This document shows positions 11,192-54,373 of a stretch of 64,000 nucleotides of DNA, piece after piece (position 1 is the first letter of the stretch; each line of letters begins with the position of its first letter). The position numbers and the translations under genes were made by a program. The notes under the pieces are model-generated. The model made no database searches. It was not told the DNA's origin and was given only the letters and a program-made list of their open reading frames with translations. The stretch comes from Adineta vaga (Eukaryota > Animalia > Rotifera). The DNA is taken from contig CP075493.1 in the NCBI GenBank assembly GCA_021613535.1, forward strand, positions 15,810,001 to 15,874,000, read 5' to 3'.

Positions 11192-12841
11192 TCATCGAGA
11201 TAGTACTTGTTTCAGAACGAGTTCAAGTTTCTGCTGACAATCAGCAAGAAGTCTCCTCTCCCGCCAAGCAATAAATCCATCAGGACGAACAAGCAAGGCT
11301 CCTTGCGATGAAATTCCAGCTGCGGTTTGCCACTGGCAATTAGGATCAGTGAGATTGCCCTTTGGTCCAGCAATATAACAATCCACATCGATGTCCAACG
11401 CAGTACTGGCTTTTCTTGCTGCTTCGCACCATGGTTCACCATCCGACCCTGCCAATAGTACAAAGGTTTTCCCAAACAAATCGAGGGTGGAAATGCGTTT
11501 GCCCTGATATTCAATCCATACATGAGGCGCACGACTTCCGGGTCTTCCGTCAAGTGCTACCATAGAAGCTATAGACCATGGTCTCCAAGTTATCCCACCT
11601 AATGGGAATGTATTTTCAACCACAACTGCTTGAGACGAGTATGTATAGCCGTGTCCAGAGGCTATGTATATCCTATTGAAGGCGCCTAATATTAGCGATA
11701 AAGTTATCTTCATAGAGATCACTCCACGTGCGTCTGCAGCGGAAGCAGATACTTCTGCCGCAGTACGCCCAACAGGAAGTCGTTCAGTATCATAAGTCGA
11801 CAACAGCCCAGGGCCTGCATGGCCTTTTAATACTAGAGCGATTTTCCAGGCTAGATTGTGGGCGTCTGCCACACCGGAATTTGCTCCTTGACCAGCCCAA
11901 GGTGGCATTTGGTGTGCGGCGTCGCCAGCAAGAAAGATACGTCCATGTTGAAATTTATCAGCAATTCGTACGGATGGCTGCCAGGGAAGAATGCTTTTGA
12001 TATCAATTTCGATATCCGGAATACCCAGTGCAACGCGCAAAATTTCTTTGCACCGTTCCGGTGGAAAATCTTCCGCATTCTCGCCTCTCGATGGATCGTA
12101 GGAGAGATGGAATACCCAACGATCGTCGTTGTTGATCGCAGTAAACAATCCAAATACTTCTGGCCGCTCAATTATGCAGAGACTGAATTCGCGTTGGCGT
12201 ACCAAGTCTTTCAAATCAGCAAGAAAGAGAATATTTAGAAGGTGTCCCATTGTTCCCATTCCGCTCGTCTCCACGCCCAATCTCTTCCGAATTGGACTTC
12301 CTGCACCATCAGCAGCAATCAAATAGTCTGCGCACACTGTATATGTCGTACCACTCTCACGCTCACGTAGAATTGCAGTGACGCCATTATCATCTTGCTC
12401 AACAGCTATACATTCCGTGTAGAACCGGGCATCGACCCCGCGTTCCCGCGCTGTTGCCAATAACACAGGCTCGATCATATCCTGTGTTCCCCACGCTCCA
12501 GTCACAGGACTGATACTCCCAAGCAGTCCCGATCCAGGGAATTTTCTCGGTCCTTCTTTTCGAGGTTTAGACTCGATCACTTCTCTGAGTGAAGTACCCG
12601 TGTAGATACCCATACTAGGAGACAGAGTTGAGCCAGCCGCTCGAACTGCTTCGTCAATTCCAAGGCTTCGATATATCTCCATGGTACGCGCATTGACGCT
12701 GCGAGATCGAGGATGGATCGAGGTATCCGCATGGCGTTCGACGAGAATAGAGTCGATTCTATGGTCGGCGAGGAAGAGTGAGGCTGATAGACCGACTATG
12801 CCTCCGCCAACAATGAGAACTGGAACCCGAATTACGGTCAT
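11192..12841 (-). CDS. FAD-dependent aromatic monooxygenase (FAD_binding_3, PheA/TfdB/RdmE-like), intronless, probable HGT
   Basis: 549 aa with GGGIVG, ERH...HPR, IAADGAGSPIR, GRIFLAGDAAH-MPP-AGQGAN, PGSRAPHVW and LLVRPDGFIAWR. Visibly more GC-rich than its flanks. Confidence 0.93.
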   Translation of the reverse strand: MTVIRVPVLIVGGGIVGLSASLFLADHRIDSILVERHADTSIHPRSRSVNARTMEIYRSLGIDEAVRAAGSTLSPSMGIYTGTSLREVIESKPRKEGPRKFPGSGLLGSISPVTGAWGTQDMIEPVLLATARERGVDARFYTECIAVEQDDNGVTAILRERESGTTYTVCADYLIAADGAGSPIRKRLGVETSGMGTMGHLLNILFLADLKDLVRQREFSLCIIERPEVFGLFTAINNDDRWVFHLSYDPSRGENAEDFPPERCKEILRVALGIPDIEIDIKSILPWQPSVRIADKFQHGRIFLAGDAAHQMPPWAGQGANSGVADAHNLAWKIALVLKGHAGPGLLSTYDTERLPVGRTAAEVSASAADARGVISMKITLSLILGAFNRIYIASGHGYTYSSQAVVVENTFPLGGITWRPWSIASMVALDGRPGSRAPHVWIEYQGKRISTLDLFGKTFVLLAGSDGEPWCEAARKASTALDIDVDCYIAGPKGNLTDPNCQWQTAAGISSQGALLVRPDGFIAWRERRLLADCQQKLELVLKQVLSR

Positions 12842-37013: not shown

Positions 37014-37509
37014 CCCTATGGCGCTGGATGTCCCATATATGAGACGACGACTTTTTTCATTATATAATCTGTATGAATATGACTTCAAATACAATTCTAC
37101 GCAAGTATTTGAGGAGTTCTATCTATCATGAGGATACAGGGATCAATAGTGATCATGGTTTTACAATAACTATGCATTGCTGAAGATAGAATAGTCGAGA
37201 CATAGCATCAAATTGAAACGCTTGTTTGGACAACAACACGACGTTTTTCGTTAAAGGTTAAAAACTCGAATAACGAACGAAGACACTGTCTTGTTTACAC
37301 TCATGCAACTCATGAGCCCAAGCACGAAACAGAAACTAGCTGTAAATGTAAAGAGCGTCATGTTGACTTACTCGTGTTACTATGTTTCGAAGTCTATCAT
37401 ACATTGAAACATGTTTAATAGGAATTATGTTGTAAAGAGCGAAGGTCATTGAGTCATGGGCATTCCAGTGATTGAGAAAGCCGTTTTTCCTCCAAAACGC
37501 ACGAAAGGG
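37014..37509 (+). mobile_element. Internally deleted piggyBac element
   Basis: TTAA|CCCT...AGGG|TTAA. Retains a decayed Cys-rich C-terminus RRHCLV...TSCKCKE...LCFEVYHT. Confidence 0.8.
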
Positions 37510-37848
37510 TTAATCCCCAGACATTCGCAATTGTTTGACAACGTTCCGGTATTAATTCTAGATGACAACTAGAAACTCATCCGTGATTCGCTTCTTGAAC
37601 ATTACGCAGCTCTTGATATCCAATAGATTTACTTACAAAAGGGCGCAGGTGTGAATGTAAATGTTCTATTTATCACTCCCATCCCCATCCCCCAATGGTA
37701 TATTAGTAATTCAGGTCATTATTCCATCACTTGCCATCAGTTATTAAGACGTTTTACAATAATTATCATACTTCTTATTTTGAATCAAATATACCGATAT
37801 TTTCTATTTCATTTTAAAACAAACTTCTAATGAATACTACTGTTTAGA

Positions 37849-40756
37849 ATGAGTTACAAAGCTGCCAAGACCAGTGGTCGAAAACAACAGGCAATTTTGA
37901 ATGATTTATTGACCTTTGATGCACTCTCAGCGTCAGCTGCAACGCGTTTGCCGCATGATTGCTATATGATTCTTGTCGGTCACATTACCAGCCATGAAGA
38001 TTTTGACAGACTGACGAAAGCAGCCGGAAATCACGATGGATCAGATGATAAACAAGAATCAGCGAATACAAATTTCACAATGATGGAATCTGAAGAAATG
38101 GAGTATTTTTTGGAATCTGCAACTTTGCTTCGGAAAACAGCCGTCGGCGAGCTCACTAATGATCGTGAACACCGTTTTGTCTATGAAGATAATTTCAATC
38201 CTGCTCTGTTGACTATGGTAAAAAAGCAAGCATCATTTCAACAATTGAAGAAGGTTTGTCGTTACTATGAAAAGCAAAAAGACGTTGATACAGAGAAGGT
38301 CATGGCTGAACATCTATATCGAACTGAACAATCTGCTCCATACTTCAAAAATATGGGTTTATCATCAGACGATTCCCAAGGAGCGGCCTTGGCTCTATCG
38401 TTTTACACAGGCACCAAGAGTGAATTAGTTAGTCGTGATGCTAATATTATCGCACGTCACGCAAACGGAGAAGTTATCGAAAATAAAACCGTCGAAGAAA
38501 TGCATGAAGCAGCGGTTATTCTCTATTTTTTAGTTAAAGCACTTTCTAATATTCCTTACTATTGGGGTTATGTTACGAGAGCTGTTACCTTGACCGATGA
38601 AGAACTCAAACTCTATATACCCGGTTGCCTAGTTACATGGATTCAATTTAGCAGCTCAAAGAAAGGCAAAGAGGTCGCCGCGGGTTTTGATTTTAGTATG
38701 CGAAACACTGTTTTTAAACTCTATTCATTAACCGGCCGTCCAATAGGGCAATTTTCTAATTTCCAAAATGAAGATGAGGTATTATTTTTACCACATTCTA
38801 CATTTTTTGTCTTCAGACACGATACCGACTATCACGGTTCACAGCATATTATTTACATGAGGCAGGTCGAATTGGGTCTTTGCGAGTGGTCCGTTTTATG
38901 GGTGGATGATCGAATATTTCATGAAAAATGGCAAAATAAAAGCGATATGGAAAGTGCAGCTACGAGATCCATGAATTTAAATGTGCATTTTATCCCAAAA
39001 ACATCAACTGAAAGTGCTCTTTCATTTCTTCGATCACCTTTTGGACAACGTTTGAAAAACAAAGACAAATTTCGTATTGTAACAGACATGAATCGTGAAA
39101 ATGAAAAGCCCGTTCATAATGCAGGTGCACGATTCATTAAAGCTGTACGACGTCTTGGCTTTAAAAACGCATGTATGGTATTTACTAGTGATCAAAGAAA
39201 AGCAGAACAAATTCTTCGATCAGAATTAAATTCAACAGATTTGAGTCGTGTGGCAGTATCAGATAGAACTAAAGATCTACGATCTTTTGTGAATTTTGAG
39301 CAAACAGTCACAAATCCTCAACAATCAATCTTTAAACATTCAGACGAATCTGATAAGTTTCAACAGTCAACATATTCTAGTAAGTTGAGAGAGAGAGAGA
39401 GAGACAGATCTGATGAAGTTTTTTCTTATCAATGCCATCGCTAGTGAAATTTTCAGAGTAGTTCTGATTGTTCGATAAACTGATGTAACTAAATCTTCGT
39501 GTTTTGTAAACTCTGCAAAGTTAATTTAGATCAATTCCTTCATCAGGTACGTGAGCAGTGGAAGTATCACATCTACTCACTGAAAAGCTATTTTTATGGC
39601 TAGTTTTTCTTCAGACTTGTGGCTACTCAAAAATCTCATAGCATTCTACTATTACCTGATCATTAGCAATTTTTGTGCAAGATGACTTTATGAGGAATCA
39701 ATCTTTCTCATCTTTTTAATGACTTTAGAACATGAAACAAATTCACACAAAATGCTCAGCGCCACTTCAAACATGTATCAAGGAAGCAGTAGTAGTCAAT
39801 ACGACGAAACTCCTAATGAAACTGACTATGAAATGATGCATAATCGAATGAATACCAATATTGACATTTTAATAAGAAATTGTAAAATACGAAATTTGGC
39901 AGATAGTCGTGATAAGTAAGTATTCGTATGATAGATACCATCCTGAGGATGATTGTACTCTTTAAGCTATTCATTAACGTTTTATAATATCTCTCATTTA
40001 TGTGTAGTTGTGTTTTGCTTACAACTGGTTCTTTTAATCCTGTTCATCCTTATCATTTTCAAAGTCTTCTACGTGTCAAACAATATCTTGAAAATGAACA
40101 TCAGCCTCCATGGAATGTACTTGCAGGATACATCTCGCCAACACAGTATGTTTCTTTCAATTTATTTCTTCCATAATCGATATGTGTATAAATTCTTTGC
40201 TAGTGATTCTTATGTGCGTCAAAAATTGGGTGACCGCGCATGGATTCCAGCTAACAATCGATGTCGACTTTGCGAAGGTGCTATCGAGTATGAGAGTGAA
40301 GAAATATCATCTTGGATTCGTGTTTCTCATGGTGAAAGTGAATGGTCTGATGGATTTGTTGATTTTGGTCCTGTCACCGAAAATTTCAGAGATTTTCTTA
40401 ATAGCAAACTTGTTGGGCAAGGAAACATTTTCAAATATCCATTGCGTGTAGTTTATGTTTGTGGATTAGATCATTATAACAAATGTTCTTATGTTGAAAG
40501 TATGGCAAAACAGAAAAACATGGCGTGTGCTGTTGTTTTTCGCGTGGGATATGATGAAAAACAAATAAGTCGTTCAGTGAAAACAACAAGTGTCATTTAC
40601 ATCCCCTTATCAACGGAATGTAATAAAACTGCTGATGTAAGTTCAACCGCAATTCGACAATATTTTGAAAATCCAAATACTAGCAAGACACATATCGAAC
40701 GATATATATATCCTAATGTTCGTGATTACATGTGTAGAAAGTACGCAAAAAAATGA
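37849..40756 (+). CDS. Predicted fusion of ADP-ribosyltransferase (R-S-E type) + receiver-like domain + NMNAT/NadD-like adenylyltransferase; 4 exons, ~802 aa
   Basis: Exons 37849-39379, 39729-39915, 40008-40145 and 40204-40756 (2409 nt, open frame). ART: YVTRAV, FSSSK, NEDEVLF. Receiver-like: VLWVDD...N, IVTDMNR, VFT. NMNAT: TGSFNPVHPYH, GYISPTHDSYV, VCGLD, VSSTAIR. Confidence 0.8.
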
Positions 40757-40846
40757 AACCTTGAATTTAAAGTTTAATTCTTCTTTTAAATGATTTTAAG
40801 ACTATTTTATCTCTACTATATTTATCTAATAAAACATATTTTCTAT

Positions 40847-40920
40847 CTTGAGGGTGTGGGTATAGGTGTAGATAGGAGTGTGTGTATCATGCTTTCTCTT
40901 TATCCCTACCCACTCTCCAA
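40847..40920. repeat. Degenerate telomere-repeat palindrome
   Basis: cttgagggtgtggg...ccctacccactctccaa, located between two convergent 3' ends. Confidence 0.5.
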
Positions 40921-41000
40921 TTGTGCATCGAAAAATGAATAAAAATATTAATTAGTTTCTTTTATTTCATTTTGAAGCAGATTATCACGAACATTATTTA

Positions 41001-43802
41001 TTAAAAATAAATTCGATTATCATTTTCTTTTAATTGTTGTCTGACTGCTACGGAAACTTCCTTGTTGAATGAAAGATCCAATGACTTAATTATCTATACA
41101 AAACAAAAAGAACAAGAAATCAGAGAGATAATAAGAGAATCAAGCTTACTTTATTATATTGTAAAGCATCAGCAAGAGATTGCGCACTGTCGTCTGTGAT
41201 TTTATTGTTAGAAAGAGACAATTGGATAAGTCCCTGTGGATCAGAAAAAAGATAACTATGAAAATGAAGAAAACAATGATATATTTACTGTGTTATTTTT
41301 TAATGCATCAGCTAAATATTGTGCACCAATGTTTCCGATATTGTTGGATGTGAGGTATAGTGTTTTGAGCATCTGTGTGCAGAGGAAAAAAGATTATCAT
41401 GCGAAAGGGAAATAAAAAAAAGATATGAATGTTACTGAATTATTTTGTAAAGCATCAGCAAGATATTGTGCGCCATCATCGCCAATTCCATTACTTGTCA
41501 GTACAAGTATGTTGAGCATCTGTGTGAAACAAAAAAATAATTAGAAGAAATATAAATAGGATAATTACTATGTTTTGTTGCAAGACATCAGCAAAATACT
41601 TCGCTCCAAGTGCTGTTATGTTATTTTTGTCAAGAGATAATGATTTCAGGATCTGTGCAAAAAATGGATCATGAATAAGGAATAAAAAATCGAAAATGAA
41701 AGTCACTGTATTATTTTGCAAAGCATAAGCGAGATGTTGTGCACCAATAGGTCCGATTTTATTGTAACCAATTTGTAACTGTTGAAGTTTCTATACTCAG
41801 AGCAAAAGCAATGCGTGTGTGAAAAATGTAAAACAATTAAATATTACCATGTTATTTCTTAGACTATCGGCAAGATATTGTGCACCTAGATCATCAATAT
41901 GATTGAGGGAGACATCTAATACAGTTAACTCCTAGATATACAGAATAGAATAGTTATGAAGACAGAATAACGCTCACTGCGCCATTTTGTAAGGCATTTG
42001 CGAGGTGTTTCACTCCATCATTCCCGATCTGAGTACTTGACAATTCAAGAGTGGTGAGTATCTGTATGAAAGAAAACAACACAAACAGAAAATAAAGAAG
42101 AGAAACAGAAAACAAAAGGTATAGTTGCCTTGTTCTGTTCTATTGCATCAGCGAGATGTTTAGCTCCAAGAACTCCAATTTTATTGTTTGCGAGATTTAA
42201 TGTGACCAGTTTCTGTCCAAAGAACAATAAGTGGATATTAAACAAAGAAAAGTGGATGACACCTACTGTGTTATATAGCAAAGCATCAGCAAGAGACTGC
42301 GCACCGCCTTCCGTAATTTTATTACTAGACAAGTACAAACCCATGAGTCTCTATGCATCAAGAAACGAATAGAAGTATGAAAAATGAGGAAAACAATGAT
42401 ATTCACTGTGTTATTTTTTAATGCATCAGCAAAATATTGTGCACCTATGTTTCCGACATTACTAGATATGAGGTAGAGTGTTTCGAGCTTTTGTGTGTAG
42501 AGTAAAAATAGATTATCATCAAAGAGAATTTAAAAAATAACATGAATGTTACTGTATTATTTTGTAAAGCATCAGCAAGATATTGTGCTCCATAGTCTCC
42601 GATTTTAGTGCCTTGGAGAACTAATGTTTTGAGCGTCTGTATGAAGACAACAAATGAATGTGAAATGGACAAAAAGAAAATACTTATTACCGGGTTATCT
42701 TGTATAGCTTCAGCAAGATGTTGTGCACCTTTATCACCAACAGCATTATAATTGATGCTCAGCGAAATGAGTGCCTAGATATCAAGAGTATGAAACATTG
42801 CTGTTCTAAATCTTAATTGAAAACTAAACATAGAGTTTACGGATATACTTCATGATTTCATTACAGTTCTTTTTCTGTACATAAGTACAGTAATAAGATG
42901 TTTATATAGGATTACATAGAAATGCAATTAGGTCAACAATATGCTGTAACTTTCGTATGTTGTAGACTTATTTTCCTTAAGAGACTGAGTGAAGCAGATA
43001 TTCTCTTACGATATCTCGTATCGCCTGGTTTGCCACAATTTCCATGTCTTGATCAGTCAAATTGTTGAACGGCAACGCCATGAACTGTTGATTTTTGTTT
43101 TCCGCAATGAATTGTTCAAGTGCGGAATTATGGTATACGAGTGGTGAACCTAGCATGATAAGATATCACTTAGATAAACATCTAAGAACAATACAATGCA
43201 AAATGTCATTATCTTTTACAATTATTGTTAAGAATCGACAATAAATTTCGGTATCAATTAAAAGGAAACTTATTCCATAGAAGAGTATGAGCAACATTTT
43301 TCCTTTTAAATTTGAAAAATTTGAGAAGCATACCTGTTGTTGTATCACTCATATTTGTGGAAGTTGAGGTGATTGTACTCGTTGTCATTGTCGTATTCAT
43401 TACTATTCATCAAAAATAAACATAAACCTTCTTTTATCATGTTTCGTTATTTGAAAATTTTTAGAACAAAATTTCTCTATTTTGTTTCTCATAGAGAATG
43501 TCACTAGGATTATATTTTTTCTACATACTAGATTGTATTGGAGGACAGAGGTTTCTATCAATCATCGATGATGGATAACATCTAGGACGATCTCCACATC
43601 GACTGTGATGAATACATAGATGCGATCGATCTGAACATTTTAGTGAAGGTCCACATAGTTCAAGTTCAGCACAAAACGTATAAAGAAAGGCACAAATACC
43701 AACATTATTTGCACCAACCATAGGGAAGCACCCACAAGCACTATTACTCGAACATCTATCATATGGCGTCATGTTACGACATATTTGAGTGTTTACTCGA
43801 CC
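41001..43802 (-). CDS. Cys-rich domain + T-rich linker + RI-type LRR protein, one 28-aa repeat per ~84-nt exon
   Basis: Cys-rich exon at about 43530-43802, linker exon at about 43333, cap exon at about 43009-43149, twelve phase-0 exons of the form L.L..N.IG..GAQ.LADAL.NN, and a last exon ending DNRIYF*. The first exon is unresolved. Confidence 0.82.
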
Positions 43803-45379
43803 TAGTACAAAACCAATCAGTGTACAGCAACAGGTAAAATCAAATAGCAAACAAACCTATCAAACTACAATGAAAAACATTTTATTCATCGAAAAATTGA
43901 AAATAAAACTAAAATTTCAAATACCTCAATAGAATAAAAATAAAATAACCTGATATTCTTCTTTCCATCAATAGATTAGATTTAAACGAGATAATATCTT
44001 GATGAAATCAATTTTTACTACTCGTAATATATATATATATATAGTCATCGTGTATAGAAATAGTTTGAAAATAAAGAATTGGACTTTGTATAATCCTTTT
44101 GATAATTGAAAATACGATACTATTGTTTTTCATTCTATTAAAAGTAATCCTATAGTGACCATGTTATACGAGGATACAAATATGAGCGCATCCTCTTGAT
44201 CATCACCTTCAAGATACAGCGAACAACAAAGGAGATAATCAATCGTGAAGTTGTAAATAAAATAAGCACACATGAACTTCTAAGAAGATGTTTATGTTCC
44301 GTTAATTGTTCTCAGAGATGAGCATTAAATGAATGCTGTGTGCGTACAGTGGCACGTTTTCGTACAATGCATACAATAATAACAATAGCTGAGATAATTG
44401 ACGAGAAAAGGAACAAATGCATGAAAAATAGTTAGTGGAGCATTATAGATATAAAGTGCAGACGATTGACGACGTTTTTTTGCTTCGAATATCATCGAGA
44501 ATATTTCGATGGAATGGATCATACACTAGAAAAGAAGAATTTTTTATTTCTGGTATAAAAGAATGACACGAACAACTTAGACAGTTTGTATCAAATAAAA
44601 AAATAGTCGTTTTCATCTCTTTGTAGGTGTAGAGATTCTCATTGCATAAAAACCTTTTCCTGTAATCAATGCGAGTTATTAGTATGCCATTGACAATCAT
44701 TTATAGAAACTAGAGTATCGATGTGTGTACGTCACGATAAAATTCAAAATGACAATTAAGAGATCATTTTTTGGACAATTCTCTTGTACTATTCAATAAG
44801 AAGTACAATATCTAAAAGTACAAAAACGAGAAAAGTCTGAAAAAAGATAGTGAAACAAAACTTTCATATTTGTATCATCTAAAATTGATTTAACTATGAG
44901 AAAGCGTGCAAAAAAACGTACGTCGTTCTCCATTATTATTTGATATACTAAACACGTGGCTATATAACTTGCATTTCATGAGGAATAAACATCACAACCA
45001 TATGTTGTATCATTTTCTTCACGTAAACTTCGATTGATATCGTTAATCTTTTCTATTCTCGAAATCTTTTCCAAAAAGAGTTTACAAGGACTGAACGTCC
45101 ATTTATGTTCGAAGTCGAATTAGGTAACTCATGAAAACATGTGACTTAGTTTTGATTCATTATATTCCAACGGATAATTGCATATATAAAAAAAAGTTCG
45201 CTCATTTTCTTGGTTAATATCCCTCCAAAATTGGAGGAAGATAATTAGCTTTCCAATGAACGGCATTATAATGTTAGATGCTAAATGAAAAAGAAATGCA
45301 AATATTACCATTAAATCTCGTAGATTATCAGCGAAGCTCTTCTTTATATGTATCATAGTGTTAGGATAAAATAAAATTA

Positions 45380-47764
45380 TGGTATTTGTCTGTAATAATA
45401 CTCTTAGATATTCTACACTTGGATTTCCTATTCGATTATGAGAAATATTCATTTGTTGAGGTGTCTAAAGATAATCAGAATATATGTATTAGCTGAAGAG
45501 AAATAAAAATATCTTTATTCATTTCCAATGCATTTGCAAGTTATTTTGTTCCTTCTGCTAAGATTTAATAAAGTTAATGTCTAATTATAGATGAATAAAT
45601 TGATTAGAATGAACGATTAGAACCGAATAATATTCACTGTGTTTCTCTCTGATGCGTCAGCAATATGTTCTGCTCTCCAAACTCCAATTTCATTCATGCT
45701 AAGGTTTAGTCTCAAAAGTATCTGTGTATGAAGTAGTACAACAGCCATTAGTCCTGCTCCATAATCGCCAATCTAATTATTGGTCAGATCGATTTCTACT
45801 AGTGTCTATAAATTAAGTATAAAATAAAAACATACGAGAGAATTGGATAATGAGAATTACTTTGTTGATTTTCAACATATTCGCAAGATATTTCCTTCTT
45901 TTAATTCCAATTCGAGTATTTTTCAATATAAATGTTGTTAATGTCTATTAAAAGAAAATCAGATAAAAATCCAAAAATTGAAATAGAGAGATCATGAGAA
46001 ATACTGTATTATCTTGTATGACGTCAGCAAGACTCTTAGTACCAGTTGCTCCGATTCGATTGTGGGAAAAAATCACTGTTTTTAGTATCTTTAAGTGTTA
46101 TATAAAGAAGAATGTATATTTGATCATACATATCAGAGTATTACCGTATTATCTCGTAATCCAGAAGCAAGTTTTTGTGCACCGTAGTCATAAATTACAC
46201 TTCTTTCTAAACACAATGTTATCAATCTCTATAAATAGAATAGATAGTAATATGCATTAGAAAAAGTAATAATAAAAATAATTTACAGTATTATTTCTTA
46301 AGATATCATCAAGATAATCTATTGCATATTCTGATAGAAAAATCTTTATCATATTCATTACAGAAAGTGTCTGTATATGCAAATGAAAGAATAGAATTTT
46401 TTCGAACATTACTGGATGATTGCTAATGATGGAAATAAAATATTCGATTGTATATCTTTCGTAATTATTTCAAGGTTTAGTTCCAAAGTAGTAAATGTCT
46501 ATATATGAATTGAAATAGTATCAAAGAAAGATTTTGAAGAGTAGAAATTCACTTGATCAGTTTGTAATCTGATACCTGTTTCTTAACACAAGTATCTGCT
46601 TTTGTAAATTATGCCTAAATCTAACGTTTCTAGAGTCTGCATATAAAAGAGATTGTAAAAATGTGAGATATTTTATATTTTACTACTAACTGTATTGTAT
46701 TTTAATCCACCCAAAAGTATTTTTATTTCATTTTTATCTGATACATTTGCATTGAGATGTAGTATTTTTAGTGTCTGTTTAAAAAGCGAATGATATGTAC
46801 AAGTTCGAATAAAAGAGACAAAGTGAAAGTTACTGTGTTTGTTCGCAAAAGATCAGGAATATATTGTGCGCGTCTGTTGAATTGATGTCAATTCTATTAA
46901 GAAATACTTTAGAAATAGTCTAGACGAACGATACAGTATAAGAAAAAGTAACGAATAATATAATATTAATTTGAGAAACATCAGCGAAGTACATCATTTG
47001 TTCATCTCGAATATTATTATTGTGTAGTTGGATTTAATTGATTGTCTAAATGTAGAATAGACAATCGATAAGATTGAAATAATGAGGAACTATGAGTAAC
47101 TGTATTGTTCCGTAAAGCATCGATAATATACTTGACGCTTTCAGTGTTAAGACGAATGTTGTTCAATGAAAATTTGATTAATGACTATAACAATAAGACA
47201 TCGAACGTTGCTTATATCATTTTTTATTCGGTTCGCCGCTCCAACAACTTTATCGCAAGAATTCCTATTTAGTTCAAGATACACTTTGATCAGAGTATGT
47301 TGTAAAAATTCAAATAAATATTCTGCTCTAAGAATATCAATTCGATTAGAATTAAGATTGAGTGTCGTAAGAATCTGTGTATGCACAAAAAAAAATTACC
47401 AGATTTTCTCGTAATGCCAAAGCGAGATATCGTGCACCATATGGTCTCCAATTTTGAGCGTCTAGATATCACAAAATGCCTCGCACAGCGGATACATTCC
47501 GTTGTCTCCTATTCTGTTCCATCCGCAATGTCTAGTACTGTAAGTGTCTATGTAAAGTAGCAAAATTGAATAGAAACTATAGAAGAGAATAATAATGACT
47601 TTGTTAGTTTTTAACATCTGAGCTATATACTGAACTCCTTTCGCATCAATACGATTTAAACAAAGAGTTAAAAGATTATTTGGTTCTTGTTAAATGCATG
47701 GAGAAGATACTGTATGTCGCAATCATTTATACAAAGGCAAGAGAGATCTAGTTCGATAAGTGTC
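45380..47764 (-). pseudogene. Decayed one-repeat-per-exon LRR array
   Basis: Remnants such as LTTLNLNSNRIDILRAEYL and MNISHNRIGNPSVEYL at ~130-bp spacing, with stops and frameshifts. Confidence 0.7.
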
Positions 47765-48016
47765 TGTATATGAATATCGTTTTGAAAAAGATATCTTTAT
47801 TTTTCCTTATAAAAAACGTTGAACATAGTAATAAAGCATCATATTTAGAACTAAATTTAATCAACCTTCTTTTTTATTAAATAATTACTTACATCGATGA
47901 CACTTTTTTTTGTTAAATCGTTAAATTAAATGATAACCATTGTTTTTATATAAGATTACATAGATCGAACCGCAGCCTTAGTAGTAGTAGTGGTCAGTAT
48001 CATTCATTGGTACTGT

Positions 48017-49252: not shown

Positions 49253-51289
49253 CTAAACATTTTTCTCTATAATTTCAATCCAATGACATGTAGTTTCAAT
49301 ATCTGGATGAGTTGGAGGAAGAGAATGTTTCTGTATGTCTTGGGCTCGTTGAAAGTACGACAATGCTTTCGAATTCGCTCCTGTGTTGTAATACAGGACG
49401 CCGATGCTGTGGCAGGCAGAAGCCAAGGAGAGGTGATTTGCAGGAAGAGTTTTCTCAAAGATATCAAGTGTTCTTTCGTAGAACGACAATGCTTCCATGT
49501 ACTCTTTCATATTGGCATACACTAGACCAATGTTATAATAGGAAGCCCCTAGGAATGGATGATTTGCAGGAAGATTTCTCTGTAAGTTAGCAAGTGTTTT
49601 TTCGTAGAACGACAGCGCTTTCTTGTACTCTTTCATATCGGCATACACCAAACCAATGTTATTGTAAGAAGTAGCTAGATTAGGATCATTTTCAGGGAGA
49701 TTTTTCTGATCGATATCAAGTACTTTTTCATAGAATGACAGTGCCTTCGAATGCTGTTCCATTTTGGAATACACCAAGCCAATGTTGTTGTAGGAAGCAG
49801 CTAAATAAGGATGATTTTCAGAAAGAATTTTTTCATTAACACCAATTGATTGTTCATAATAACGAATAGCTGCTTCGTAATCACCTTGTTGATCCTTGAT
49901 GCGTCCCAAATCATTATGATAATAGGCTTGATCGTGTTGTTCCAATGTCTGCCCAAGCAAGGTGAGACACAATTCTTCGGCTTTGTCCAGTTGTCCAACC
50001 CGGATCAGTAATTTAGCAATCCGGCTCCATCCTGTAATACCTTGCGTCTCTTCTTCGAACCTTCTGGTAAGTCTGCGAAGTTGTTCGTCATCATCCGCCG
50101 TCAGAGCCAGTTGCACTTCGAAGAGCTGACCACCCTCGTCTATTCTCTTCACTTGATTGATACGAAAGATGCTATGCATGGAAAAGAGTATCTCCGCTTC
50201 GGTTTGAAAATAACTGGCGGCTTGAATATCAGCGAAGGGTGTCGACGAGATTGTCGGATCAACGGTTATGACGAAAAGAATACCGACCATGCCCGTCTTC
50301 TTCGAAGAACCTTGAGCGAAGTTTAAGGAAACAGACTTCTCCTTGCTGGTGGAAAGAAAGTTGTTGAACGATATTAGTCCACCTTGTGTATTTTTCAGTT
50401 TCTCGAAATTGATTGTCGAGAGTCCTTGTCCTCGGTAAACCATAAAAGGTTGGTCACGATACTGACTAATCTGCTCTTGATGTAGTTGCCCAATTTGTCG
50501 ATGAAGATCATGAATAAAGAAGCCCATATTGACGATTATGTCCGCTTCCAATAATCGGAGAGCTCGATTAAGCATCTGATAAGTAAAACACTCTCGAGTG
50601 TACCACCAAATTGCCTTATTTGGACAATAGTCCCTCTCGAATTCATCGATGACTGTCAATTCGCTTGAATTACCAGTATATTTTCCTCTGCAGTAGTTTA
50701 TCAGGTCCTGGCGAGATTGCTCGCTGTGTTCCATATTGATCAAAGCATCCTTGAATAATTGGGTGTACATAAAGGAAGGCTCTATTTGATTCAGATCAGT
50801 AGTGGAGCTCATCTCATTCGAGACAACAAAGCTTATCGGCATGGTGTCTTGATTGTATTGCTTGACAGAAGATTGAAGGGCCTCACAGATGAGTTGGATG
50901 CGGTTGTATACACCCTTGATTTTGGGCCACTTTGTGATCCACTGTTTGTGTGCGCCCTGATTGCCACATAATATATAAATAGAATTCAACTGTGTCATCG
51001 AATGAATTTGTGGCACTAACTCTTGTCCCATATAGCCTGAACTAATAACAAAGACTTCCTCAGTATGAATCCTTTGCAGAAAGTCCATACACTGATCTAG
51101 TTGATTGAATACTGTAACATTGTTGATCACATTACGTATTTGATACAGAGTCTGTTGGAAATCCTTGTCGAACTCTGTGATACTGCCGTCTATCCATATG
51201 AGTAGAACATTCTGGAGAATGCGTCCTTTGGACGAATCTGTGTCCAACTTTTTGGCTGCGTTTGTAGCATTATTGATTGAACTAGCCAT
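49253..51289 (-). CDS. ADP-ribosyltransferase + TPR (42-aa repeats) protein, intronless
   Basis: N-terminal LIWID domain; AIWWYTR, VYRGQG, FLSTS, TEAEILF; repeats of HP.LA.SYNNIGLVY...KALSFYEK. Confidence 0.93.
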   Translation of the reverse strand: MASSINNATNAAKKLDTDSSKGRILQNVLLIWIDGSITEFDKDFQQTLYQIRNVINNVTVFNQLDQCMDFLQRIHTEEVFVISSGYMGQELVPQIHSMTQLNSIYILCGNQGAHKQWITKWPKIKGVYNRIQLICEALQSSVKQYNQDTMPISFVVSNEMSSTTDLNQIEPSFMYTQLFKDALINMEHSEQSRQDLINYCRGKYTGNSSELTVIDEFERDYCPNKAIWWYTRECFTYQMLNRALRLLEADIIVNMGFFIHDLHRQIGQLHQEQISQYRDQPFMVYRGQGLSTINFEKLKNTQGGLISFNNFLSTSKEKSVSLNFAQGSSKKTGMVGILFVITVDPTISSTPFADIQAASYFQTEAEILFSMHSIFRINQVKRIDEGGQLFEVQLALTADDDEQLRRLTRRFEEETQGITGWSRIAKLLIRVGQLDKAEELCLTLLGQTLEQHDQAYYHNDLGRIKDQQGDYEAAIRYYEQSIGVNEKILSENHPYLAASYNNIGLVYSKMEQHSKALSFYEKVLDIDQKNLPENDPNLATSYNNIGLVYADMKEYKKALSFYEKTLANLQRNLPANHPFLGASYYNIGLVYANMKEYMEALSFYERTLDIFEKTLPANHLSLASACHSIGVLYYNTGANSKALSYFQRAQDIQKHSLPPTHPDIETTCHWIEIIEKNV

Positions 51290-53193: not shown

Positions 53194-54373
53194 CAGGGCT
53201 TTCCAAAATTATAGACCCCCTATACTTTTCTATCTTCTTCCTGAATAATTTATTTGACAAAGAACTGTTTTTGTACAAAATAATACACATTTACAATTTA
53301 CAAGAAAAACCGTTACAATGAATGACGTGTCGAAGTCGTTTTTGGAAGCGACTGATAAAGTTTTTGTACAGTATCATATGAAATATCTGCCCATACTTCT
53401 TGTAATGCAGATTTTAAATCATCAGTATTTGTAATCGAAAGTTTTAATAATTTCTGGTCCACAATCGACCAGATGTTCTCAATAATATTTAAATCTGGAC
53501 TATTCGATGGCCATTCCAGTAATGTAATTCGTTTTTTTTTTCAAGTATTCTTTGGTTATAGCAGATCTATGAGGACCTGCATTGTCTTGTTGATATAATA
53601 ATTTGTTCAATTGTCTAGATGGAAACTTCAGGTAAGCTGTTGATAAATGGTCCTTGAGAATGCTAATATATTCAATTGAATTGAGACGTCCACCGAAGAT
53701 GACTAATGGTCCTAAACCATGGCACGTGATGTATGACCAAACTCCTATTCCAACACCTTTATGGACTCGCTGTTGTGAACGATATAATCGACCTGGATCA
53801 TGACGAAATCGACGAATATAAATTCGATTCTTCCGATTAAGTATTTCAAAATTACTTTCATCGGAAAAAATTACGTTTGACCAATCTTCTACTGACCAAT
53901 CCAAATGTTCATAACACCAATGAAGTCGACTACGTCGTTGTACTGGAGTTATACGAGGCTTTCTTGGTGCAATAAGTGACATCATGTTATAATCTTGTAG
54001 AATACGACTTAATGTTGCTTGACTAATAGATAAATTCAAATTCGTGAAAGCATATCGAATGAGATCCTTTAATGAACTTGTATCATCTCGAAGTTGTTGA
54101 AGTTTAATTAATCGTCGTTCACGATCGGTTGTTTTTCGTGGACGACCAGCGCCAGGTTTTGCGGCGATTGTGTGAAATTTATCAAATTTACGAATTGTTG
54201 AACGAATACAACGTCGAGAAATTTTTAATTTACGAGAAATCCCGTGTGTTTATGTAGTACATGTAATCATCTATCTAACGAACATATATACTGAACAAAT
54301 AGATGTTTCTTAGAAATGCAAAATAAATTTTCTTCGACAAGACAAGGGGGGTCTATAATTTTGGAAAGCCCTG
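53194..54373 (-). mobile_element. Tc1 (DD34E) transposon, defective
   Basis: TA|cagggctttccaaaattatagacccc TIRs|TA. GRPRKTT, WSNVIFSDES, QQDNAGPH, a frameshift in the A-run at about 53535, then WPSNSPDLNIIENIW. Confidence 0.93.

Follow-up and report, generated by a model that had tools for sequence, protein, structure and literature searches.

Can the making and the spending of NAD+ be joined in a single animal protein? The depletion and reconstitution of NAD+ are central to SARM1-driven axon death, to PARP biology and to the conflict between phages and bacteria, and in all of these settings the maker and the spender are separate proteins. The question is raised by a gene of the bdelloid rotifer Adineta vaga, on the forward strand at positions 37849-40756 of a 64,000-nucleotide stretch of AT-rich eukaryotic DNA (assembly GCA_021613535.1, contig CP075493.1, positions 15,810,001 to 15,874,000; hereafter the window). 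An earlier note, made from the letters alone, had read this gene as an ADP-ribosyltransferase (ART) joined through a receiver-like domain to a domain resembling nicotinamide mononucleotide adenylyltransferase (NMNAT). The fusion gene is real, is spliced and is transcribed as one unit, and it is close to certain that its product unites an ART, a receiver fold and an NMNAT-family domain in one protein. From its N-terminus this protein consists of a helical region, the ART, the receiver-fold domain, a low-complexity linker of about 60 residues and, last, the NMNAT-family domain. What this assembly does is a matter of graded likelihood, and the reading that we tentatively favor is of an effector in which NAD+, or an analogue, would probably be synthesized locally, beside the enzyme that consumes it.

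Read from the window sequence, the gene consists of 802 codons and a stop, with three GT-AG introns of compatible phase and split codons at the three junctions (AAA for K511, AAT for N573 and CAT for H619). Its parts are the following, in window coordinates:

37848..40878, forward strand: extent of the mRNA, from RNA-type contigs of run X8 (record 23, 37848-38541; record 24, 38527-40878), three introns removed
37849..39379, forward strand: exon 1, encoding the N-terminal region, the ART, the receiver-like domain and the first part of the linker (aa 1-510 and the first base of K511), from the open reading frame (ORF) and identity to I4U23_005215
39380..39728, forward strand: intron 1, 349 nt, from GT at 39380 to AG at 39728, holding a (GA)n repeat and not present in the paralog L024
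39729..39915, forward strand: exon 2, encoding low-complexity linker and the conserved segment with which the NMNAT-like module opens (aa 548-572, nt 39839-39913)
39916..40007, forward strand: intron 2, 92 nt, GT to AG, with a joint that RNA runs X1 and X8 list and DNA run X7 does not
40008..40145, forward strand: exon 3, from the GSFNPVHPYH motif (H586 at 40045-40047) through ISPT, by sequence reading and Pfam
40146..40203, forward strand: intron 3, 58 nt, GT to AG, its joint listed in X1 and X8
40204..40756, forward strand: exon 4, completing the NMNAT-like domain (motifs HDSYV, CGLDH..KC and DVSSTAIR) and closing with the stop TGA at 40754-40756, from the ORF, Pfam and profile

Before splicing, the same region reads as a 531-aa ORF (37849-39444) followed by frames at 39731-39913, 40009-40143 and 40205-40753, and the stop that ends the 531-aa ORF (39445-39447) sits in intron 1. 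NCBI carries the gene publicly as I4U23_005215, a hypothetical protein of 802 aa from Adineta vaga, and the AV19 annotation names it FUN_000003; the NCBI model is 100% identical to exon 1 and has the same junctions (STYS-K-HETN, SRD-N-CVLL and SPT-H-DSYV). The splice pairs proposed in the earlier note (39379 to 39729, 39915 to 40008 and 40145 to 40204, all GT-AG) are exact when compared with this record and with the RNA contigs, and its single frame of about 802 residues equals the public protein. Exons were used singly as search queries, and the public record wherever a whole protein was needed.

Transcript evidence comes from four sequencing runs, labelled only "RNA?" or "?", which were aligned to window positions 37500-41100 (3601 letters). 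Record 24 of run X8 (1853 nt) aligns in four blocks (38527-39377, 39729-39915, 40008-40145 and 40204-40878), and record 3 of run X1, from another study (442 nt), aligns in three (39319-39377, 39729-39915 and 40008-40145). In the contigs of both runs exactly two letters stand between 39377 and 39729, fitting 39378-39379, and contigs from two studies therefore join 39379 to 39729 in frame; this junction is missing from the table of joints because 39378-39413 is masked as a (GA)n repeat. Since the contigs of X1 and X8 are themselves intron-free, both runs are taken to be cDNA, and run X7 is of DNA type, its collinear contig spanning 37500-40476 without a joint. The earlier note would have seen a sign of two genes in transcripts ending between 39.4 and 39.7 kb; no RNA contig in the aligned runs lies over 39436-39677. 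An AATAAA at 40828-40833 falls inside the 3' end of the RNA-covered extent. The contigs give no isoform proportions. Two further observations concern the transcript ends and the first intron. A (GA)n microsatellite occupies 39389-39403, at the 5' end of intron 1. The X8 contig starts at 37848, one base 5' of the ATG and directly after a T-rich tract and an AG (37846-37847). Spliced-leader trans-splicing occurs in bdelloids, and positions 37846-37848 may represent a trans-splice acceptor, or the start may simply be a contig end.

The motifs named in the earlier note were all located in the protein: TRAV (R244), FSSS (267-270) and EDE (308-310) in the ART; VLWVDD (349-354) in the receiver-like domain; and GSFNPVHPYH (580-589), SPTHDSYV (616-623), CGLD (705-708) and VSSTAIR (764-770) in the NMNAT-like domain. 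The ART and its residues lie as follows:

38356..38883, forward strand: R-S-E ART catalytic domain, aa 170-345, from Pfam PF01129, conservation and Foldseek
38578-38580, 38650-38652, 38770-38772 and 38776-38778, forward strand: ART residues R244, S268, E308 and E310, in that order

The Pfam family ART (PF01129) is matched with 36.8 bits over aa 177-327 (cut-off 22.3), and with 35.7 bits on the full I4U23_005215. Among 38 family members R244, F267 and E310 are invariant, E308 is kept in at least 90%, and S268-S270 are mostly kept. An AlphaFold2 (AF2) model of aa 1-345 (pLDDT 74.8) is matched by Foldseek to XopAI (2.9e-10) and Tre1 (3.8e-9), then to C3, ExoS/T, Vis and Certhrax, all of them R-S-E enzymes. 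Arginine-directed R-S-E members are marked by the ExE motif, and by motif and modelled fold the domain is an R-S-E, ExE-type, arginine-class mono-ADP-ribosyltransferase; the R-S-E type had been proposed in the earlier note. With other R-S-E mono-ARTs (ARTC; PF01129, XopAI, Tre1, C3, ExoS/T) it shares the Arg/S-x-S/ExE triad, the fold and the Pfam match, but it adds about 170 N-terminal residues, an obligatory receiver-fold domain and the NMNAT-like domain. On direct reading, made with no predictor, the first 35 residues are polar or charged, without a hydrophobic stretch, and no signal peptide is seen, so the fusion protein is probably cytosolic. For the same reason it would not be an ecto-ART: unlike the vertebrate ecto-ARTs it has neither signal peptide nor GPI (glycosylphosphatidylinositol) signal, and unlike the bacterial R-S-E toxins it is not a secreted toxin.

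The middle domain and its pocket occupy the following positions:

38884..39318, forward strand: receiver-fold (beta-alpha)5 domain, aa 346-490, from the AF2 model, Foldseek and VIA-align
38905-38910, 39085-39087 and 39184-39186, forward strand: receiver pocket residues D353/D354, D413 and T446, in that order

Mean column identity over aa 346-490 is 63% among 40 members. The AF2 model is a (beta-alpha)5 sandwich (pLDDT 82.6, pTM 0.79) whose top 50 Foldseek matches are nearly all response-regulator receiver domains; VIA-align, an independent all-against-representatives search, matches it to the ComE receiver, PorX and other receivers with Z of 12.7-10.4 and an rmsd of 2.3-3.1 over 115-124 residues. 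The check by AlphaFold and Foldseek that the earlier note had suggested thus confirms both this fold and that of the ART. An acidic pocket stands in the canonical places (D353/D354 after beta1, D413 after beta3, T446 after beta4), and among the members D353 is invariant, D354 and D413 are kept in at least 90% and T446, in an alignment read by eye, in about 70%. Profile search returned no solved-structure match for the domain, and a pattern scan of limited sensitivity returned no bacterial or archaeal kin. DUF4197 was considered and rejected as a weak match below its own cut-off, and the feature-atlas leads for the domain were all below 0.9.

At the C-terminus, CTP_transf_like (PF01467) is matched with 28.7 bits (cut-off 21) over aa 577-771, covering profile positions 1-132 of 133. 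A profile built from 26 members aligns end to end with solved NMNATs (a 263-aa NMNAT, 1e-36; human NMNAT1, 3e-33; NMNAT3, 3e-30) and matches NadD more weakly. The (H/T)xxH and SSTxxR motifs are present (H586, H589; S765-S766..R770); both His and both Ser are invariant among the 26 members and the Arg is kept in at least 90%. Because the His pair and the SS..R motif are conserved, nucleotidyl-transfer chemistry is probably intact, and there is a good chance, judging from these residues, that the domain is an active nucleotidyltransferase. With NMNAT1-3 and NadD the domain has in common its full-length homology and the (H/T)xxH, SSTxxR, SPxxDxY and CGxD motifs. Its own subfamily is marked by the signatures SP[TS]HDxYV and CGLDH..KC and includes stand-alone proteins of 240-270 aa from rotifers, Willaertia, Clastostelium and Paraglomus, together with many eukaryote-like metagenome proteins. 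The stand-alone rotifer proteins open with the same segment that forms aa 548-572 of the fusion.

The fusion is not confined to the window. The order ART, receiver, NMNAT-like domain is found at four A. vaga loci (the window gene, C3:7.27 Mb, C3:15.01 Mb and C5:5.77 Mb), and a search for the architecture across organisms, as the earlier note had advised, found fused models of 760-824 aa in A. vaga (the four loci), A. steineri, A. ricciae, Rotaria magnacalcarata and R. socialis. The copies at C3:15.01 Mb and C5:5.77 Mb have the linker intron. The copy at C3:7.27 Mb (L024, protein P0007) does not: a single 553-aa ORF runs from ART through receiver and linker to the N-terminal segment of the NMNAT-like module, and the fusion is for this reason independent of any long-intron reading. 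The C5:5.77 Mb copy (L026, G000:C5:5763000-5768000) is interrupted by two in-frame stops, the first within the ART-receiver part and the second, a TAG, in the last exon; its NCBI model is a 631-aa protein (P0082), and the copy is possibly decaying or a pseudogene. Maximum-likelihood analysis groups the fused NMNAT-like domains in a single clade (100/99), which a weakly supported fork (84/38) sets beside true stand-alone rotifer copies; the rotifer NMNAT-like copies taken together are also one clade (96/84), separate from their protist and fungal kin. Inside the fused clade fall a few "stand-alone" gene models; one is identical to the domain of a fused model, and they are probably split gene models. 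The simplest reading of this sequence evidence is that one fusion event preceded the split of Adineta and Rotaria. When the A. vaga copies are compared in pairs, dN/dS (nonsynonymous over synonymous divergence) takes values of 0.05-0.16 in the ART, 0.14-0.24 in the receiver domain and 0.11-0.30 in NMNAT exon 4. These ratios are rough because dS approaches or passes saturation (about 0.85-4.8, and incalculable for some pairs); on these comparisons all domains are under purifying selection.

The ART-receiver core is more widespread than the fusion, at no fewer than nine loci in the A. vaga genome and in at least 165 database proteins. Every ART-receiver protein with a named source among the 120 listed is from a rotifer. 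An ART-only search for non-rotifer kin returned only named rotifer proteins and metagenome fragments, and the atlas held rotifer clusters only. Throughout this rotifer family the ART is followed by the receiver-fold domain. Some members carry N-terminal caspase, ubiquitin, PDZ or rhodanese-phosphatase domains, and at the C-terminus the NMNAT-like domain is the only addition to the core. The NMNAT-like module is itself found with other partners. In A. vaga, a 493-aa ORF pairs it with a part that is protein-kinase-like by reading, without a profile; a 608-aa ORF has a kinase-like N-terminal part followed by the NMNAT-like domain; and in a third fusion the NMNAT-like domain precedes an APH/EcKL-like part. 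These three fusions lie at L011 (G000:C6:8212532-8215789), L017 (G000:C1:14224500-14228500) and L016 (G000:C3:4758500-4761800), and they suggest that the module enters fusions repeatedly in the A. vaga genome.

The gene has been catalogued before. FUN_000003 appears with PF01129 and PF01467 in Table S1 of Moris et al. 2024 (PMC10809525), a paper that does not discuss the fusion. The table's gene order (ART+TPR, NLRC5-like leucine-rich repeat, PF01129+PF01467, sulfatase, FAD monooxygenase) mirrors the window, and FUN_000003 is on this ground the fusion gene of the window (PMC10809525). It is flagged there as a candidate horizontal acquisition, with best BLAST hits in Stentor (1e-50) and Chrysochromulina (1e-42) (PMC10809525). 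Its mean expression is given as 19.6, without induction by desiccation or X-rays (PMC10809525). Among the A. vaga genes that the same source records as strongly induced are one with PF01467 only (log fold change, lfc, about +4) and one that combines PF01467 with EcKL (about +2.7) (PMC10809525); two PF01467-only genes are tabled as strongly stress-induced, and these are not mapped to the NMNAT-like subfamily. The earlier note knew of no description of this architecture. That stands insofar as literature searches found no paper describing an ART-receiver-NMNAT protein, and falls insofar as NCBI and UniProt hold fused models and the published table (PMC10809525) lists the gene: the fusion is already in public annotation but unremarked.

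Given this gene and this protein, the interpretation we lean toward, by a modest preponderance, is that of an expressed ART-receiver-NMNAT-like effector with probable local synthesis of NAD+ or an analogue beside the ART. The ART would be the output enzyme and would spend NAD+. The receiver-fold domain would gate it as a kinase-independent switch responding to a ligand, to a metal or to oligomerization. The NMNAT-like domain, since both of its ATP and catalysis motifs are kept, would probably be an active adenylyltransferase. Its product, NAD+ or a near analogue, would arise beside the ART, and the domain would in this way supply or sense the dinucleotide locally. Mammalian NMNAT1 has been reported to bind PARP1, and the covalent fusion may hard-wire a comparable coupling of NMNAT to ART. 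That sister ART-receiver proteins carry caspase, ubiquitin, PDZ or phosphatase domains suggests a role in stress, immune or cell-death signalling rather than in housekeeping NAD+ metabolism. Functional coupling between the domains, including the self-fuelling, buffering or switching that the earlier note had imagined, is purely inferred. A stronger version, in which synthesis and spending of NAD+ are hard-wired in one animal polypeptide and gated by a kinase-independent receiver, so that ART output would read the local supply of nicotinamide mononucleotide (NMN) and ATP as a bdelloid-specific stress or immune checkpoint, is speculative and on present evidence rather doubtful.

Several points weigh against local NAD+ synthesis in the service of the ART. 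Rather than being the canonical animal NMNAT, the fused domain groups with a separate subfamily of protists, fungi and rotifers, and a canonical NMNAT with all classical motifs is encoded elsewhere, on chromosome 6 (G000:C6:11326402-11327152). The residues Trp92, Glu94 and Trp169 and the Trp of the WE motif in NMNAT1 are presumably those that shape the acceptor pocket. At Trp92 and Glu94 the fused domain has Phe and Asp; the Trp169 stretch has become H(F/Y)NKC, with no conserved Trp, and in the fused copies a Gly takes the place of the WE-motif Trp (DTWES). The acceptor is uncertain because these pocket residues differ from those of human NMNAT1, and whether the product is NAD+ or its nicotinic acid counterpart (NaAD), or something else, is judged from sequence to be evenly balanced. 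The "complete-looking" adenylyltransferase of the earlier note is a full-length NMNAT homolog with intact ATP motifs, and at the same time a member of a divergent, non-canonical subfamily with a different acceptor pocket. Strict self-fuelling is unlikely, since the ART releases nicotinamide rather than NMN, NMNAT needs NMN, and NAMPT would be required as well. In the receiver fold, no Lys is conserved after strand beta5, and PF00072 gave no match to the domain in a Pfam search at E-values up to 10. Finally, FUN_000003 is expressed at a low level, which falls modestly 2.5 h after irradiation with X-rays (lfc -1.11, false discovery rate 0.002) (PMC10809525).

The alternative that survives best accepts the fusion and denies the product: the NMNAT-like domain would make no NAD+, and would be either a sensor of ATP, NMN or NAD+ that regulates the ART or a nucleotidyltransferase with another acceptor, as in the formation of a signalling dinucleotide or in adenylylation. 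This is a possible though distinctly less probable account. The separate subfamily coexisting with a canonical NMNAT and the altered pocket Trp residues speak for it, as does the fusion of the same subfamily in A. vaga to protein-kinase-like and small-molecule-kinase-like domains, which suggests a general regulatory or nucleotide-handling module. A pure sensor, however, would have no need of the conserved HxxH and SSTxxR motifs; the nearest solved relatives are all adenylyltransferases of NMN or its nicotinic acid form (NaMN); and the Phe and Asp at the positions of Trp92 and Glu94 indicate that the pocket is conservatively kept in part.

It is very improbable that the fusion is a neutral or decaying product of duplication, without joint function. 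Such a fate could account for the low expression of the window copy and for the two in-frame stops of the chromosome 5 copy, one of the four in A. vaga. It accords poorly with a fusion kept in both Adineta and Rotaria, whose dN/dS is far under 1 for each domain and whose catalytic residues are invariant.

Hardly any likelihood attaches to a true two-component receiver, in which phosphorylation by a histidine kinase would switch the enzyme between use and synthesis of NAD+. In its favor stands the receiver fold, with its DD, D and T pocket in canonical places, and the fused domain shares with CheY-like receivers (PF00072) the (beta-alpha)5 fold, the acidic residues after beta1 and beta3 and the Thr after beta4. 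It differs from them in lacking a sequence-level match to the family, a Lys after beta5 and a histidine kinase encoded in the same genome: HisKA (PF00512) has no match in the 100.8-Mb A. vaga genome, while the controls matched in 12 of 14 genomes, and PF00072 (Response_reg) has none in the whole A. vaga genome, while control genomes do have matches. "Receiver-like", the earlier note's term, is right for the fold (Z 12.7) and the pocket and wrong as the name of a phosphorelay component. Kinase-independent receivers in conflict systems have been proposed as nucleotide-responsive switches (PMC8195603), and the resemblance of the fused domain to these is a lead only (PMC8195603).

Least credible, and largely refuted, is the view that two genes lie here, an ART ending at the stop 39445-39447 and an NMNAT-like gene starting from the in-frame ATG at 39752 in exon 2, with the fused model an artefact of annotation: intron 1 is indeed far longer (349 nt) than the other two (92 and 58 nt), and several rotifer gene models and metagenome ORFs have the halves apart, but RNA contigs of two studies cross the junction in frame and none covers 39436-39677, the intronless linker of L024 keeps both modules in one ORF, and the stand-alone models within the fused clade, one identical to a fused domain, are probably split.

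The window also contains a second ART gene and other features, listed here with window coordinates:

49253-51289, reverse strand: 678-aa ORF, a second ART gene 8.5 kb downstream of the fusion gene (FUN_000001), with ADPrib_exo_Tox/ART at aa 226-385 followed by TPR_12 repeats
about 41000-48000, reverse strand: many short exons between the two ART genes, encoding RNI/NLR-type leucine-rich repeats with a motif like GAQYLADALQNN, corresponding to the NLRC5-like FUN_000002 of the published table
11192-12841, reverse strand: FAD-binding aromatic-ring monooxygenase (549 aa), flagged as horizontally acquired (PMC10809525)
31350-31994, reverse strand: sulfatase fragment, flagged as horizontally acquired (PMC10809525)
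19880-20998, forward strand: ORF of endonuclease/reverse-transcriptase type (non-LTR retroelement)
53500-54039, reverse strand: fragment of a Tc3-type transposase helix-turn-helix

The "LIWID" N-terminal region of the ART-TPR gene was tried as a further receiver-like domain and rejected (hhalign probability 0.8%).

Natural fusions and partnerships of NMNAT include NadM-Nudix, NadR, the mouse WldS protein and the binding of NMNAT1 to PARP1. What the A. vaga protein has in common with them is a module for NAD+ synthesis tied to an enzyme or regulator of NAD+ or ADP-ribose; relative to NMNAT1-3 themselves, its domain belongs to a distinct subfamily, with the Trp169 equivalent not conserved and the WE-motif Trp replaced by Gly. 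To our knowledge, none of these partnerships joins NMNAT covalently to an R-S-E ART by way of a receiver fold. The covalent fusion of an ART to an NMNAT-family domain would be a natural experiment in substrate channelling or NAD+-gated signalling, and the recombinant protein would be a tractable system in which to ask whether local NAD+ synthesis controls an ART. Should the C-terminal domain make no NAD+, the non-canonical NMNAT-like subfamily, in which protists share, would itself become the question. An obligatory receiver fold in an animal without a detectable histidine kinase also offers a clean case for receiver switches that work independently of a kinase.

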